NCBI RefSeq assembly: GCF_947568905.1
Contig: NC_079168.1
Span: 4,836,001-4,900,000 of the forward strand
Direction: 5' to 3'
DNA: 64,000 nt
From: Ostrea edulis
Taxonomy: Eukaryota
This document shows positions 17,307 through 61,000 of this stretch, piece after piece. The position numbers and the translations under genes are program-made. The notes below the pieces were generated by a model. The model ran no database searches, was not told the origin of the DNA, and was given only the letters and a program-made list of their open reading frames with translations. Every line of letters starts with the position of its first letter. Position 1 is the stretch's first letter.

Positions 17307-19372
17307 ATGAGAGGGGTGTTTAACATAATATGCACACTATGCTTAATTCCTAAGGCCTATGGTGAGTACTTTTGTAGTCTTCTTTTCTGAAGATGACCTG
17401 AATAATTATCATAAAGAAGAGGTTTTTGGACATAGATAAGTCACTGCGTGGACATTTATGATTTAATTTCCCCTCATATGCTAGTGAGACTGTAGTCGGT
17501 GTAATCCGGTTCTTTGATTGAATCTAATATCCATGTATGATTAAAAAGATAAAATGTGAACAGCAAATATATATAGAATACTAGTACTCTTCTTGGTATA
17601 TTCTTCACTTTGTTCAAGGCTCTATAATCGTGATTCTTTCATCTAAAAAGATTCTACATAACCTGTCATGAAATTTTAATGGTATTAACAAGACACCTTA
17701 CTTTTTTATATTACAGATAATGAAGATAGAACTGATAATTTAGACAATAAATATTTTAATTATCTTTACAGGGTTCTCCATTAGGCGGTCTTCGTTTGAC
17801 CCAAATGCATTATTCCAACAACAGGCTCAGATCGCATCTTCCTCCATTAAAGGATCCGGAAGTGTAGCGTCTCCTAGCGGAGGAACCTCGGGTTCTCAAT
17901 CCGGGGGTTCTTCAAGTTCATCATCATCATTTGACCCCAATTCTTTGAACAACCAAATGATGCAGAGTGCAAACCAGGGACCTCCAAACTCAGGCAGTTC
18001 TTCCGGCGCTGCGTCGTCTTTTGATCCAAATTCACTCAATAATCAGATGATGCAAAGTGGCGGTTCATCATCGGGAGGATTTGATCCAAATGCCTTGAAT
18101 AATCAAATAATGCAGCAGAACTCCCAAAGTAGCACCGGAGGTGGAAGTGGAACTGCATCATTTAACCCAGATACTGTAAATAAGCCGATATCGCAGTCTC
18201 AAAGCGCCGGTGGTTCCAGTGGTGGATCCAGTAGTTCTAGTCAGATGAGTGGAGGATCATCGTCCGGCTCATCGTCGTTTAATCCAAATACATTAAATCA
18301 GCAGATGTCCCAGCCCCAAAGTACTGGGAGTGGTAGCAGTATGGGAGGCGGTTCCAGTGCTTCCTCCGGTAGTTCTTCCTCTTTCAACCCAAACGCAATG
18401 AACCAGCAAATGTCACAATCCCTAAGTTCGGGAGGTTCAACTGGCGGATCTAGTCAAATGAGCGGCGGTTCTAGTCAAATGAGTGGTGGGTCTAGTCAAA
18501 TGAGTGGTGGATCTAGCCAAATGAGTAGTGGATCTAATCAAATGAGCGGTGGATCTAGTCAAATGAGTGGTGGTTCGTCTAGCATGTCAGGTGGTGGTTT
18601 TGATCCTACATCCATGAATAATCAGATGCTGCAAAATAATCTGCAACAAATGGCCACTGGTCAACAGACAAATGCCAACATGATGAGTGGTGGTTCTTCT
18701 GGCGGAAGCGGGGGTAGCTCAAGCATGTCCAGCATGAGTGGTAGTGGCGGATCCAGTGGAAGTGGAGGAGGAAGTTTTGATCCAAACTCTCTTAATAAAC
18801 CAGAAAATAATAAGATTGACCCTAGTATGTTTATGTCCAATATGGGCGGATCTGGCGGTAGTAGCTCGAGCGGAAGCTCCAGTGGCGGAAGTTCAAGTGG
18901 CGGATCCAGTCAAATGATGAGCGGAGGAAGTTCCGGTGGCGGAAGTTCCGGTGGCGGATCCAGTCAAATGATGTCGACTTCCAGCATGATGGGTGGAGGA
19001 AGTTCTGGTGGGAGTTCGAGTGGCGGATCTAGTCAAATGATGTCGCCTTCCAACATGATGAGCGGTGGAAGTTCTGGTGGGAGTTCAAGTGGTGGATCTA
19101 ATCAAATGATGTCGCCTTCCAACATGATGGGTGGAGGAAGTTCTGGCGGAAGTTCGAGCGGCGGATCTAGTCAAATGATGTCGCCTTCCAACATGATGGG
19201 CGGTGGAAGTTCTGGCGGGAGTTCTGGCGGAAGTTCAAGCGGCGGATCAAGTTCGAGCAGCGGAGGAAGCATGCCAAACTTTAACCCCAATCAGCTGATA
19301 CAGAACATGATGAGTGGCATGAATCTCATGAACCCTAGTCAATTTGTCGGCAGGAAAAGATTTGTCCGTTAA
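17307..19372 (+). CDS. Cluster gene 1: secreted Gly/Ser/Met/Gln-rich FDPN-repeat protein, ~551 aa; join(17307..17361,17772..19372)
   Basis: Signal exon MRGVFNIICTLCLIPKAYG ends g|gtgagt (phase 1). Acceptor tctttacag|gg gives G-FSIRR-SSFDPNALFQQQ in frame with the 475-aa ORF. Ends PSQFVGRKRFVR*; AATAAA at 19388. Confidence 0.85.
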
Positions 19373-20423
19373 ATGAGGAACAATTTCAATAAATTACGAA
19401 GTACATCTTTTTATGTCGTTTATTCAAATCCATTCGGGCCACTCAAATTTTAATCGGTTTGAAACACTTTGCCAGGGTAACCACTATGAGCCTATCAAGC
19501 GAAACCATGAATTAATACAAGAATTAAACGCGCATAACGATGCAAATTCTAACTATTTAGCAGAATGGTGAATCAAAACAATATGTACCGTAATTTCTGT
19601 CGGAGCTGCATGTACTTCCTAGTAGATCTTCAAAGGCAGCGAAGTAAACGCGACTTGCGCAAGCTATACTTATTCTCGCATCTGATTTGAAGATTCGTTG
19701 GAAACTCCACCTTCGTTAGGTTTTCAAACTTCCTGAATCAATAAATTACATGCTCTTGGTCCACCTTACACTTTCACAGCTCGACTCCTCGTTCTAGTTG
19801 CTATGCGTTATCGCTTAATGAAAAGTATGCTGGAGTGAAGCCTTGCTGTTTGTACCCTCATGTAATTTCGAAAAGGAAATTTATATTTTAATTTCATTCC
19901 TGTCGGAATATTCCCAGCCGTTGAAATCGTCGTAGTATACATGTATTTATTACTTCACTTTCATGAAGAAATGGCTATCATTTCTATTGGTAAAGATATT
20001 GACGGTAAAGACCTAGGAAATGTAAATATTATGCGATATAACCCGGGTTGAGCCACTTTACGCTCGATAAAAATTCATAATCCGCGAAGCTTATCGTAAA
20101 AAAGTGAAACTGACCCAAACCAGGTTATGTTGCATAATATGCCCCAAAATCAAATTCATTAAAATAATAAAACAATGTCCTTTCTAAACACTTTTTATTT
20201 CGTTTTATCTGGATTAACCTGTGCTATAGATCTGTGAGGGTTGTCCTTAGAGTTCGAAGACGAATGTCCATAAATGCGACGCTGACGTCTTACACTTACA
20301 AAGTATATACATGTACCGTGAGCAGAATCAACAATCACCAGTAGAAATGTCTACAAATAGTAGGAGATAAAGAAAAACAAAGACATAAAATTACACCCGA
20401 TATTGATATATCAAACATACCCC

Positions 20424-58078: not shown

Positions 58079-61000
58079 ATGTTACCAAAAATACTAATAT
58101 TTACATTGATATATTCCATATCAGCTGAATCCAATCGGTATGTGTTGGAATTCCGACGGCTACTTTCAAGTGAGTGTTTCTCATAGAATTATTTACTCCC
58201 CTATCGGCTAGTTTGAATTACAAATGTTATGAATAACCTTTATGGCAAATTTAAACTATCTACTGAAATTCGATTGATATGCTATTGATTTATATTTATA
58301 AAGGCAATTCAGTTCACAGAAGACAGACGTTTGATCCTAACGCCATGATGTTTGGAGGGGGAAGTTCAACTTCGAGTAAATCCCAGTTCATGGGCAGCTT
58401 CAACCCAAACCAGATGATGAGCAGCATGGGGACCGGCATGAATATGTTTAATCCTGGATCCCAAACTAGCGGACAGACCTCAACTCAATCATCCGGTACG
58501 ATGACGTCATTCGATCCCACAAAGCTCAACAATCAATTAAGCAGTTCTTCTGGATCCCAAACTAGCGGGCAGACCTCATCCCAATCATCCGGTACGATGA
58601 CATCATTCGATCCCACAAAGCTCAACAATCAATTAAGCAGTTCTTCTGGATCCCAAACTAGCGGGCAGACCTCATCCCAATCATCCGGTACGATGACGTC
58701 ATTCGATCCCACAAAGCTCAACAATCAATTAAGCAGTTCTTCTGGATCCCAAACTAGCGGGCAGACCTCATCCCAATCATCCGGTACGATGACGTCATTC
58801 GATCCCACAAAGCTCAACAATCAATTAAGCAGTTCTTCTGGATCCCAAACTAGTGGAATGGGCGGTGGTTTTAGTCCCAATCAAATGATGGGAGGTGGAA
58901 CTCAGTCTGGGGGAACCAGTGGAACCAGTTCGGGTAGTACCAATACTGGAGGCTCCTCTGCTTTTGGGGGTAGTTTTAATCCAAACCAACAAGGTGGTGC
59001 TCAGTTTACAAATCCAATGTCACAAATGGGAGGGGGACAGGGAGGAGCATCATCGTCAACTATAACAAATTATAATCCCAATAATGCCGCAGTAAATATG
59101 GCAGGAGGTTATGATCCAAATGCTGCCAACTCAGGACAGGGCACAGGAGGGAATGCACCATCATTTACGAACGGAATGGGCATGAATGCCCAGCAGCAAT
59201 CGATGGGAGGAGGGACCATGCCAAGTGGCAATGGCATGACGCAGCAATCAGGTAGTGGAGGTACTTCCACACCAAGTGGTGCAAGCAGTGGGGGTGGGAG
59301 CTCTTCTTTTGGAAGTCCCACTGGATCGGGAACGAGTTCACCTGGAACAGGTAGTGCTTCGTCATTTGGAAGTCCAACTGGCTCAGGAAGCAGTACCTCT
59401 GGAAGTGGTAGTTCCTCATCCTTTGGGAGTCCAACTGGATCTGGATCAAGCGCTTCTTCCTTTGGAAGTCCAACCGGATCTCCTAGTAACTCACAAGGAA
59501 GTCCAAGTTCTTTTGGCAGCTCTACCGGGACACAAAGTGCATCTACAAGCGGAGGCAGCAGTTCTGGTGCTGCAGCGTTTGGTAGTCCCACATCCGGAGG
59601 TGGGTCTTCATCTGGAAGTGGTGCAAGCCAGACTTCCGGTGGGGGATCAACAATGTCGTCATTTGATCCTATTAAGACAAACGTTGAGACAACTCAGACT
59701 GGATTTAATCCCCTTAGCCCAGCTTTAGGTATGGATGTGATTTATTGGGTACTATTATCAAGTTAAGGAAATAAGGTACTTTTATCAAGTCATCTTAATT
59801 ACACTATGCGTAACAATACAGCAAAATAAACGTAACTGATCGAAGTGAAGAATATTACCTATATCAATATGCATTACTTCGAGCATGTTTTCTTGTAGGG
59901 AAAGTACAAAACTTCATGGGACCCCAATCCAGTTGTGAGTATGACAGTTTTTGTAGCAGTACAAATTAATTCATATGTATTGCAGGGACACCCTTATTTC
60001 TTTTATTTATGTTTATTTAGCAACTGGTGGTGTTTTCGATCCCGGTTCAGTAAACACGCAGATGGCGGTACAAGGAGCTAGCTTGAATATGTTTGGAGGT
60101 AAGAGTTATCCCAGAACACTCAGAATGACTAGTAAATGACCAATACCAAACTGCGATACGACTGTCAAATATACTTTCTGCAAGTGGTCTGCCATTGCTA
60201 TACTAGGTGCTGGGGGCAGTGATCCAAACAAAATGGATGCCAGCTCATTAATGGGTGGATCTCCTGGAATGATGAGCGGAGCCAGTCAAGTTAATGGTGG
60301 ATCCAGTAGTGGTGGAAGTAAGACAAACATATTTAATCCTATGGGATCAATGATGGGTGGATCCACTGGGAGTGGAGGTGGAACTTCGGGTCCTATGAAT
60401 ATGATGAATTCTATGATGAGTACATCTGGCTCAGGAAGAACGAGCAGTTCAAGTAACGTAGAAGTTTCTAAAAGTAACTGGATAAGATATACAGTGTATG
60501 GAAACGGCTGAAAATTATTCATACATGTATATGCAAGCGTCTAGAACCTATCACTCTTCTGTTATGAAAACTTCAAAATATTCCTGTATGTACAAATTCA
60601 GTGGCGTCATATTGCAAACAAACTAATCGCGATTTAAGAAATGCGTTTCATAGCTGTTCCATTTTAGTTGACTGTTCAACGTAAAGTTAATAGAGAATTA
60701 AAAATTATCAAAACACTCCTCAAATAACACGTGTGTAAAATCATTCGTTTGGGAGTAGCTTGTGCCTTATGAATTAGAATGCACTCTTGCAATAAACGGT
60801 GCATGGGATTAATCATGAATAGAATCAAGCAATACTTACCTATTTCCTCTGTTAACTGTAGGTGGTACTTATTTCCTCTGCTGACTGTAGGTGGTACTTA
60901 TTTCCTGTGCCGACCGCTGCGATGGCCGAGAGGTTAGAGCGTTCGTCCCGCATGCGGAAGGCCGGGGTTCGAATCCCGGCCCCGACAGACCAAAGTCATT

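Follow-up and report, generated by a model that had tools for sequence, protein, structure and literature searches.

The 64,000-nucleotide stretch of Ostrea edulis DNA analysed here (hereafter the window; contig NC_079168.1, positions 4,836,001 to 4,900,000) holds a tandem cluster of paralogous genes encoding secreted proteins, and a short motif with the pattern [FY][DN]P..[LIVMFA]N recurs through these proteins far above chance. Eight genes, numbered 1 to 8 along the window, were considered; the motif is common to six of them, one of which (gene 3) carries only the core [FY][DN]P. The family has no name and can be described as secreted low-complexity repeat proteins carrying a short linear motif. 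The reading favoured here, held with about even confidence, is that these are a bivalve-specific family of secreted, convertase-processed, disordered polypeptides, in which the motif forms a capped turn and serves as a multivalent contact site.

The full motif was searched in the six-frame translation of the window, which contains no N runs, and 42 matches spanning positions 17930 to 60035 were obtained (8 in gene 1, 3 in gene 4, 9 in gene 6, 16 in gene 7 and 6 in gene 8). All 42 fall in Gly/Ser/Asn-rich coding frames, and long open reading frames of this composition extend from 17.7 to 60.5 kb. Every motif string quoted in an earlier sequence-only reading of the window was present, and its remark that gene 3 has the shorter core was borne out by the regular-expression search, in which genes 2 and 5 gave no match in the window frames. 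That reading also described Gly/Ser spacers of variable length, and the spacings between motifs indeed range from 10 to 184 residues. It further regarded the paralogues as otherwise unalignable, which more or less holds: once composition was corrected for, no BLASTP comparison of the paralogues did better than E = 0.001 and the alignments were anchored on the motifs, and without correction the scores mirrored composition only. In addition, most aromatic residues of some proteins are placed at the motif, since 10 of the 15 in gene 1 and 11 of the 13 in gene 3 are its first residue, and the motif is frequently trailed by x3-Met/Phe-x-Phe.

The recurrence might be thought an artefact of composition or of recent duplication, with no selection on the motif itself, and 11 of the 42 matches are in fact extra copies from two young tandem duplications in genes 7 and 8. 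Once identical copies were collapsed, 31 distinct matches remained against fewer than one expected: DNA shuffled in 300-bp blocks gave a mean of 0.68 matches per window (maximum 3), and residues shuffled within each protein gave 0.000 to 0.04 full motifs compared with 2 to 9 observed. The motif therefore stands far above composition-matched shuffles, the comparison on which the sequence-only reading had staked its claim. The longer form was also assessed on the bare core alone, using 60 distinct instances of [FY][DN]P and background frequencies of 0.10 for Asn and 0.23 for hydrophobic residues. Position +3 was Asn in 33 of the 60 instances and Asn or Asp in 40, position +5 was hydrophobic in 48, and position +6 was Asn in 35; this enrichment, conditioned on the core alone, indicates that the longer motif is not a product of the search pattern.

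Conservation between species points in the same direction. Among eight gene 6 orthologues from oysters and one scallop, identity to O. edulis was 0.85 on motif residues versus 0.45 elsewhere, and in a 22-member alignment the corresponding values were 0.65 and 0.26; none of 5000 random 7-mer placements matched either motif value. F at position 0, P at +2 and N at +6 are nearly invariant, and the Met at +10 and Phe at +12 are conserved too. The 20 proteins of the gene 6 family that were counted carry 5 to 13 full motifs each, compared with about 0.03 in shuffles. Between O. edulis and Saccostrea, the small paralogues showed identity of 0.81 in the motif versus 0.68 elsewhere (Fisher p = 4e-4), and the effect was strong in gene 7. 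The alignments show the motif to be under purifying selection. From oysters and scallops to pearl oysters and mussels, it is the motif columns that stay invariant, and, together with the shuffles and the motif counts in the gene 6 family, this already refutes an artefactual origin, the probability of which is judged to be next to nothing.

The family is present in at least five bivalve orders. Saccostrea echinata retains both the order and the orientation of genes 2, 3, 4, 6, 7 and 8, motifs included, and gene 2 (L001 1471-2262) is conserved there in position and partly in sequence. In the scallop Mizuhopecten, gene 7-like units follow the gene 6 orthologue, and several such units are clustered in the unionid Potamilus. 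A 1469-aa model downstream of the Mizuhopecten gene 6 orthologue (L003 16149-24096) combines gene 7-like units with EF-hand domain hits, perhaps because two adjacent genes were annotated as one. A profile built from eight gene 6 orthologues, a scan of the kind that the sequence-only reading had put forward as a check, retrieved 22 proteins among 1.84 billion representatives, and all named ones are bivalve (Argopecten, Pinctada, Mytilus coruscus, Mizuhopecten, Crassostrea, Magallana, Saccostrea and Ostrea); they are annotated as uncharacterised or bear automatic names typical of Asn-rich proteins. For the gene 7 unit, a protein of 65% identity was found in Potamilus and further relatives in Sinanodonta; these unionid proteins have a C-terminal Gly or Gly-Lys in addition to a signal peptide, a K-R-Q site and motifs. 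A word-index search with the unionid protein gave 4 matches and was swamped by low-complexity words.

Although nearly unalignable, the cluster genes are paralogues and have a common architecture. Neither this architecture and its processing signals nor the conservation of the family across bivalves had been noted in the sequence-only reading. A first exon restricted to the signal peptide, with a phase-1 donor at its end, is found in genes 1, 3, 4, 5, 6 and 7, and is confirmed for gene 6 by the public protein; the signal peptides of genes 1, 3 and 4 also resemble one another. In genes 1, 3, 5, 7 and 8, the second exon opens with two to five residues, then [KR]R, then Gln or Ser. At the other end, Gly followed by basic residues closes gene 1 (F-V-G-R-K-R-F-V-R), gene 3 (F-G-K-K), gene 4 (F-G-R-K) and gene 7 (L-L-G-R), and Gly-basic C-termini occur in the Saccostrea and unionid relatives as well, the Saccostrea gene 3 orthologue ending F-G-R-K. 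Within gene 7, [KR]R is confined to the unit borders, where the linker reads V-G-K-R / G-I-V / K-R-Q and a phase-1 intron lies inside it. The chains would presumably be cleaved by proprotein convertases at [KR]R, directly behind the signal peptide and, in gene 7, from one unit to the next; the products could then cyclise at an N-terminal Gln and be amidated at a C-terminal Gly.

This layout, with a signal peptide, repeated units with dibasic flanks and Gly as a potential amide donor, is that of a prohormone, and the proteins could accordingly be prohormone-like precursors, from which dibasic cleavage releases signalling or otherwise bioactive units blocked by pyroglutamate and amide, the motif being part of receptor recognition. 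The short pro-piece ending in [KR]R and followed by Gln, the gene 7 borders with no other basic pairs, the C-terminal Gly, Gly-Lys or Gly-Arg kept from oysters to unionids, and a C-terminal gene 7 module of about 55 residues that is 65% identical between oyster and unionid all speak for this possibility. However, the pieces between the gene 7 dibasic sites would be about 140 residues long and mostly Gly/Ser, gene 6 has roughly 1000 residues and no such unit structure, and mature peptides of the short size typical of prohormones (<50 residues) are therefore found in neither gene. The motif strings were also absent from the available parts of the supplements of PMC4200219 and PMC6425005. This prohormone-like alternative is considered unlikely.

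The structural side was approached by running AlphaFold2 with family alignments on gene 6 and on the gene 7 unit. The models, with a mean predicted local distance difference test score (pLDDT) of 39 and 57, respectively, read as disordered, with a few short helices, no strands and no tertiary packing. Helices start at the motif Pro at residues 312, 704, 745, 790, 800, 812 and 834 of gene 6 and at residues 57, 70 and 124 of the gene 7 unit, and begin one turn after the Pro at residues 30 and 97 of the latter. The variant sites F-D-A-D-T-V-N, F-D-V-N-S-Q-L and Y-D-T-D-K-A-L also start helices (467, 680 and 824). The motif might therefore be a helix N-terminal cap, with Asx at the N-cap, Pro at N1 and a hydrophobic staple from N' to N4, or, equivalently, an Asx-Pro turn; [DN]-P-[ND]-x is the Asx-Pro turn of Asn-Pro-Asn-Ala repeats. 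The residue pattern expected of such a cap is present, with F/Y at position 0 and D/N at position 1, both fixed by the core itself, and the hydrophobic preference at +5 described above. In an otherwise floppy chain, the motif would pre-form one or two helical turns, and a chain bearing 5 to 20 such copies, set apart by Gly/Ser spacers, would present a multivalent contact site.

The sequence-only reading had suggested a self-association or cross-beta sticker. An amyloid-like, cross-beta sticker would suit the Asn/Gln-rich composition and Phe-rich stretches such as F-N-F-F-N after some motifs, and the idea is disfavoured by the invariant Pro inside the motif and by models that lack strands and begin their helices at that Pro; on present evidence it is very improbable. 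The sticker idea survives in helical form, in which the motif would mediate self-association, which is plausible, or the binding of another family member or of a conserved partner in extracellular material.

The composition of the proteins bears on where such material might be found. Cys is absent except in the gene 6 signal peptide, charged residues are very few, and isoelectric points lie between 4.9 and 9.1, which argues against acidic mineral-binding proteins and cationic antimicrobial peptides; gene 1 contains 11% Met and gene 5 contains 11% Phe. The proteins may be structural parts of a hard or elastic bivalve tissue such as the shell matrix, periostracum or hinge ligament, with the motif binding chitin or calcium carbonate or serving as a site for a modifying enzyme, and not as a sticker between proteins. 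Every named relative is bivalve, and the Gly/Ser/Met/Phe-rich, uncharged and Cys-free make-up recalls bivalve ligament and Gly-rich shell proteins. On the other hand, there are almost no acidic residues, unlike in classical mineral-binding matrix proteins, a full-text search for the motif strings gave no relevant paper, and the Met-rich insoluble proteins of Pinctada nacre, prism and ligament lack the motif. The shell proteome of Crassostrea nippona includes a secreted 132-kDa protein that shares an automatic name with some gene 6 orthologues and may be one of them; its size does not fit the gene 6 orthologues of about 106 kDa. This structural role is also regarded as improbable, and it overlaps, as does the prohormone alternative, with the favoured reading, so that the three are not strictly exclusive.

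A more specific form of the favoured reading, which is entertained only tentatively, is that of ancient, bivalve-specific, convertase-cut polypeptides, fully disordered except for many copies of a capped one-turn helix, that assemble via helical stickers into a secreted gel or condensate for a bivalve-specific material such as shell, ligament or periostracum, both ends of the polypeptide possibly being blocked by pyroglutamate and amide. If true, bivalves would possess a type of extracellular sticker-and-spacer system that has so far gone undescribed.

Several points weigh against reading the family as processed, disordered chains with capped-turn contact sites. The tissue, the partner and the mode of assembly are inferences, the cleavage and the end modifications by pyroglutamate formation and amidation are predicted from sequence, and the sequencing runs containing the locus are of DNA and silent on transcription. 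The structural models are of low confidence, their helices are short, and the helix starts at or just after the motif Pro carry a pLDDT of only 40 to 70, so that the helix N-cap is a model-based proposal. Moreover, the motif of gene 3 is hardly better conserved than its spacers between O. edulis and Saccostrea (0.73 versus 0.65), as is that of gene 8 (0.71 versus 0.69), and genes 2 and 5 belong to the cluster and do without the motif.

Secreted low-complexity proteins of molluscs mostly change too quickly for comparison across families, whereas here a motif of 7 to 13 residues and a module of about 55 residues have been kept from oysters to freshwater mussels in a syntenic cluster. This provides a concrete handle, with specific residues to mutate, on how disordered extracellular bivalve proteins recognise one another or a partner. 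It also poses the question of why chains rich in Gly and Ser should bear processing signals like those of prohormones. Should shell, ligament or mucus prove to be built from these proteins, the motif would become a candidate element in the design of protein-based materials.

The window and the public locus OX387708.1:4869574-4892720 are colinear, and the exon models of genes 4, 5, 6 and 7 match the public calls (108, 312, 991 and 610 aa, respectively) in span. Gene 1 lies on the forward strand, with a signal-peptide exon (17307..17361) ending in a phase-1 GTGAGT donor and a second exon (17772..19372) that starts x-F-S-I-R-R-S-S, is rich in Ser, Gly, Met, Asn and Gln, carries 10 core motifs and ends in QFV-G-RKR-FVR and a stop codon. 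Gene 2 (23334-24482, forward) is a Pro/Gln-rich open frame within the cluster. Gene 3 (24609..25280, reverse) has a signal-peptide exon at 25280-25232, a phase-1 intron and a second exon from 25000, which opens with P-I-K-R-Q-S-S and consists of repeats of about 10 residues built on F-[DNQ]-P up to its terminal F-G-K-K. Gene 4 (35555..37002, reverse) has three exons and 5 core motifs. Gene 5 (39539..40629, reverse) is a Gly/Phe/Ser/Asn-rich paralogue, with a signal-peptide exon, a phase-1 intron and an R-R-Q-S-S start as in its sister genes. At 39539-40417 on the reverse strand, S-N-P-F-G-G (Asn-Pro-Phe) repeats take the place of the F-[DN]-P motif in gene 5, and this repeat could be a permuted or independent sticker.

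Gene 6 (43574..46720, forward) encodes a secreted protein with 15 core and 9 full motifs; its first exon (43574-43616) encodes the signal peptide and is followed by a phase-1 intron and one large exon. A model with a single coding exon was dropped, as the public protein has a separate signal-peptide exon. A Logan-derived protein, whose 90% cluster includes XP_056023058.1 of Ostrea edulis, matches the gene 6 translation residue for residue. The pointer to mollusc proteomes in the sequence-only reading was correct. Gene 7 (49698..55078, forward) has seven exons (49698-49761, 49864-50029, 50771-51072, 51762-52208, 52488-52934, 53214-53660 and 54651-55078), all with GT-AG junctions. Between 51762 and 53660 on the same strand, three near-identical copies of a unit exon plus intron are repeated with a period of 726 bp, and each unit contains the conserved module twice. 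With the frame intact, the model gives 764-766 aa with three repeat exons and 615-617 aa with two, from which the public 610-aa call probably uses two. Gene 8 (58304..60508, forward) is a partial model with a large exon starting x-N-S-V-H-R-R-Q-T-F-D-P-N, four identical 96-bp repeats (58454-58853) and, further downstream, two or more exon-like frames (near 60020-60110 and 60200-60508); a signal-peptide exon for this gene was looked for and not found in the window.

Six sequencing runs contain gene 6, and four of them were compared with 46300-52250, where their contigs cross introns and intergenic DNA. The use of the runs as expression evidence was rejected, since flat depth and the lack of splice joints mark them as DNA runs. 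Depth across the gene 7 repeat was raised 2-3.5x in these independent runs, suggesting that the repeat is multi-copy in other individuals too. The ratios across the four DNA runs ranged from about 2.2x to 3.5x, and copy number may therefore vary between individuals.

A 24-bp minisatellite of about 167 copies with 91% match lies just upstream of gene 1 (12816-16826) and accounts for the long spurious open reading frames found there on both strands. Intergenic minisatellites with periods of 19, 23/46, 59/117/176, 32, 35, 43 and 41 bp fill most of the space between the genes (8456-10443, 25555-27718, 29560-34959, 37865-38508, 42264-42581, 55399-56256 and 62128-62457) and explain the extreme GC content, skew and AT-rich blocks of the composition profile. 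In addition, very-high-copy dispersed repeats lie at 47100-48700, 48900-49300 and 50080-50480, with similar peptide frames at 53715-53900 and 60869-61243; their summed contig depth in the four DNA runs is thousands of times that of flanking DNA, and these repeats between and inside the genes are probably transposable elements.

The sequence-only reading had called the motif unnamed, which holds within the searches of Pfam, PDB and full-text literature made here. The best Pfam matches of nine exon translations had E values of 0.15-0.38 and scored far below the gathering cut-offs, and the homologues have no precomputed Pfam domain. The gene 6 profile gave 0 matches in PDB, and the gene 7 unit profile matched only unrelated PDB chains, many of them engineered fusions, all via Gly/Ser spacer positions; a search for ESM Atlas look-alikes of the C-terminal part of gene 6 gave no usable match. 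No relevant paper was found in full-text literature for the motif strings or for eleven LOC, XP and UniProt identifiers of the orthologues (Mizuhopecten, Argopecten, Pinctada, Mytilus, Crassostrea, Magallana and Ostrea), and the motif is not reported in the main text of the ProminTools paper, a Lottia-based analysis.

Among known systems, abductin, the Met-rich ligament and shell proteins of Pinctada, and the shematrins are likewise secreted, repetitive, Gly-rich and nearly uncharged. The repeats known from abductin and the shematrins differ from the oyster motif. The Pinctada Met-rich proteins (NU-5, LMP and others) differ as well, the sequence supplement of PMC7591529 containing one chance F-D-P-S and no series of the [FY][DN]Pxx-h-N motif (h, hydrophobic), and an identity of the family with ligament or Met-rich proteins was rejected on this ground. 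Neuropeptide precursors share the signal peptide, dibasic unit borders, Gly before and Gln after these borders, and short spacer peptides, whereas the oyster family has units of about 140 residues that are mostly Gly/Ser and a gene 6 that is organised otherwise; strings of the family were not found in the mollusc neuropeptide surveys PMC4200219 and PMC6425005, as far as the parts of their supplements covered here extend.

The closest likenesses concern the motif itself. An Asx N-cap reinforced by hydrophobic contacts between N' and N4 is an established helix start signal (PMC11101637; the hydrophobic staple originally by Munoz, Blanco and Serrano 1995, as cited therein), and the oyster motif resembles it in its hydrophobic N', Asp/Asn N-cap, Pro N1 and hydrophobic N4, but differs in having an extra conserved Asn at +6 and in being a free-standing unit, present in 5-20 copies in a disordered secreted chain, rather than the start of a helix in a folded domain. 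Sticker-and-spacer low-complexity proteins, such as those with FG-type repeats, are similar in that their aromatics sit in short motifs between variable Gly/Ser spacers and the chains are modelled as disordered, and multivalent aromatic motifs in flexible spacers are indeed what the oyster proteins display; the latter differ in being extracellular and in having as their putative sticker a strongly selected motif of 7-13 residues instead of a bare aromatic residue.

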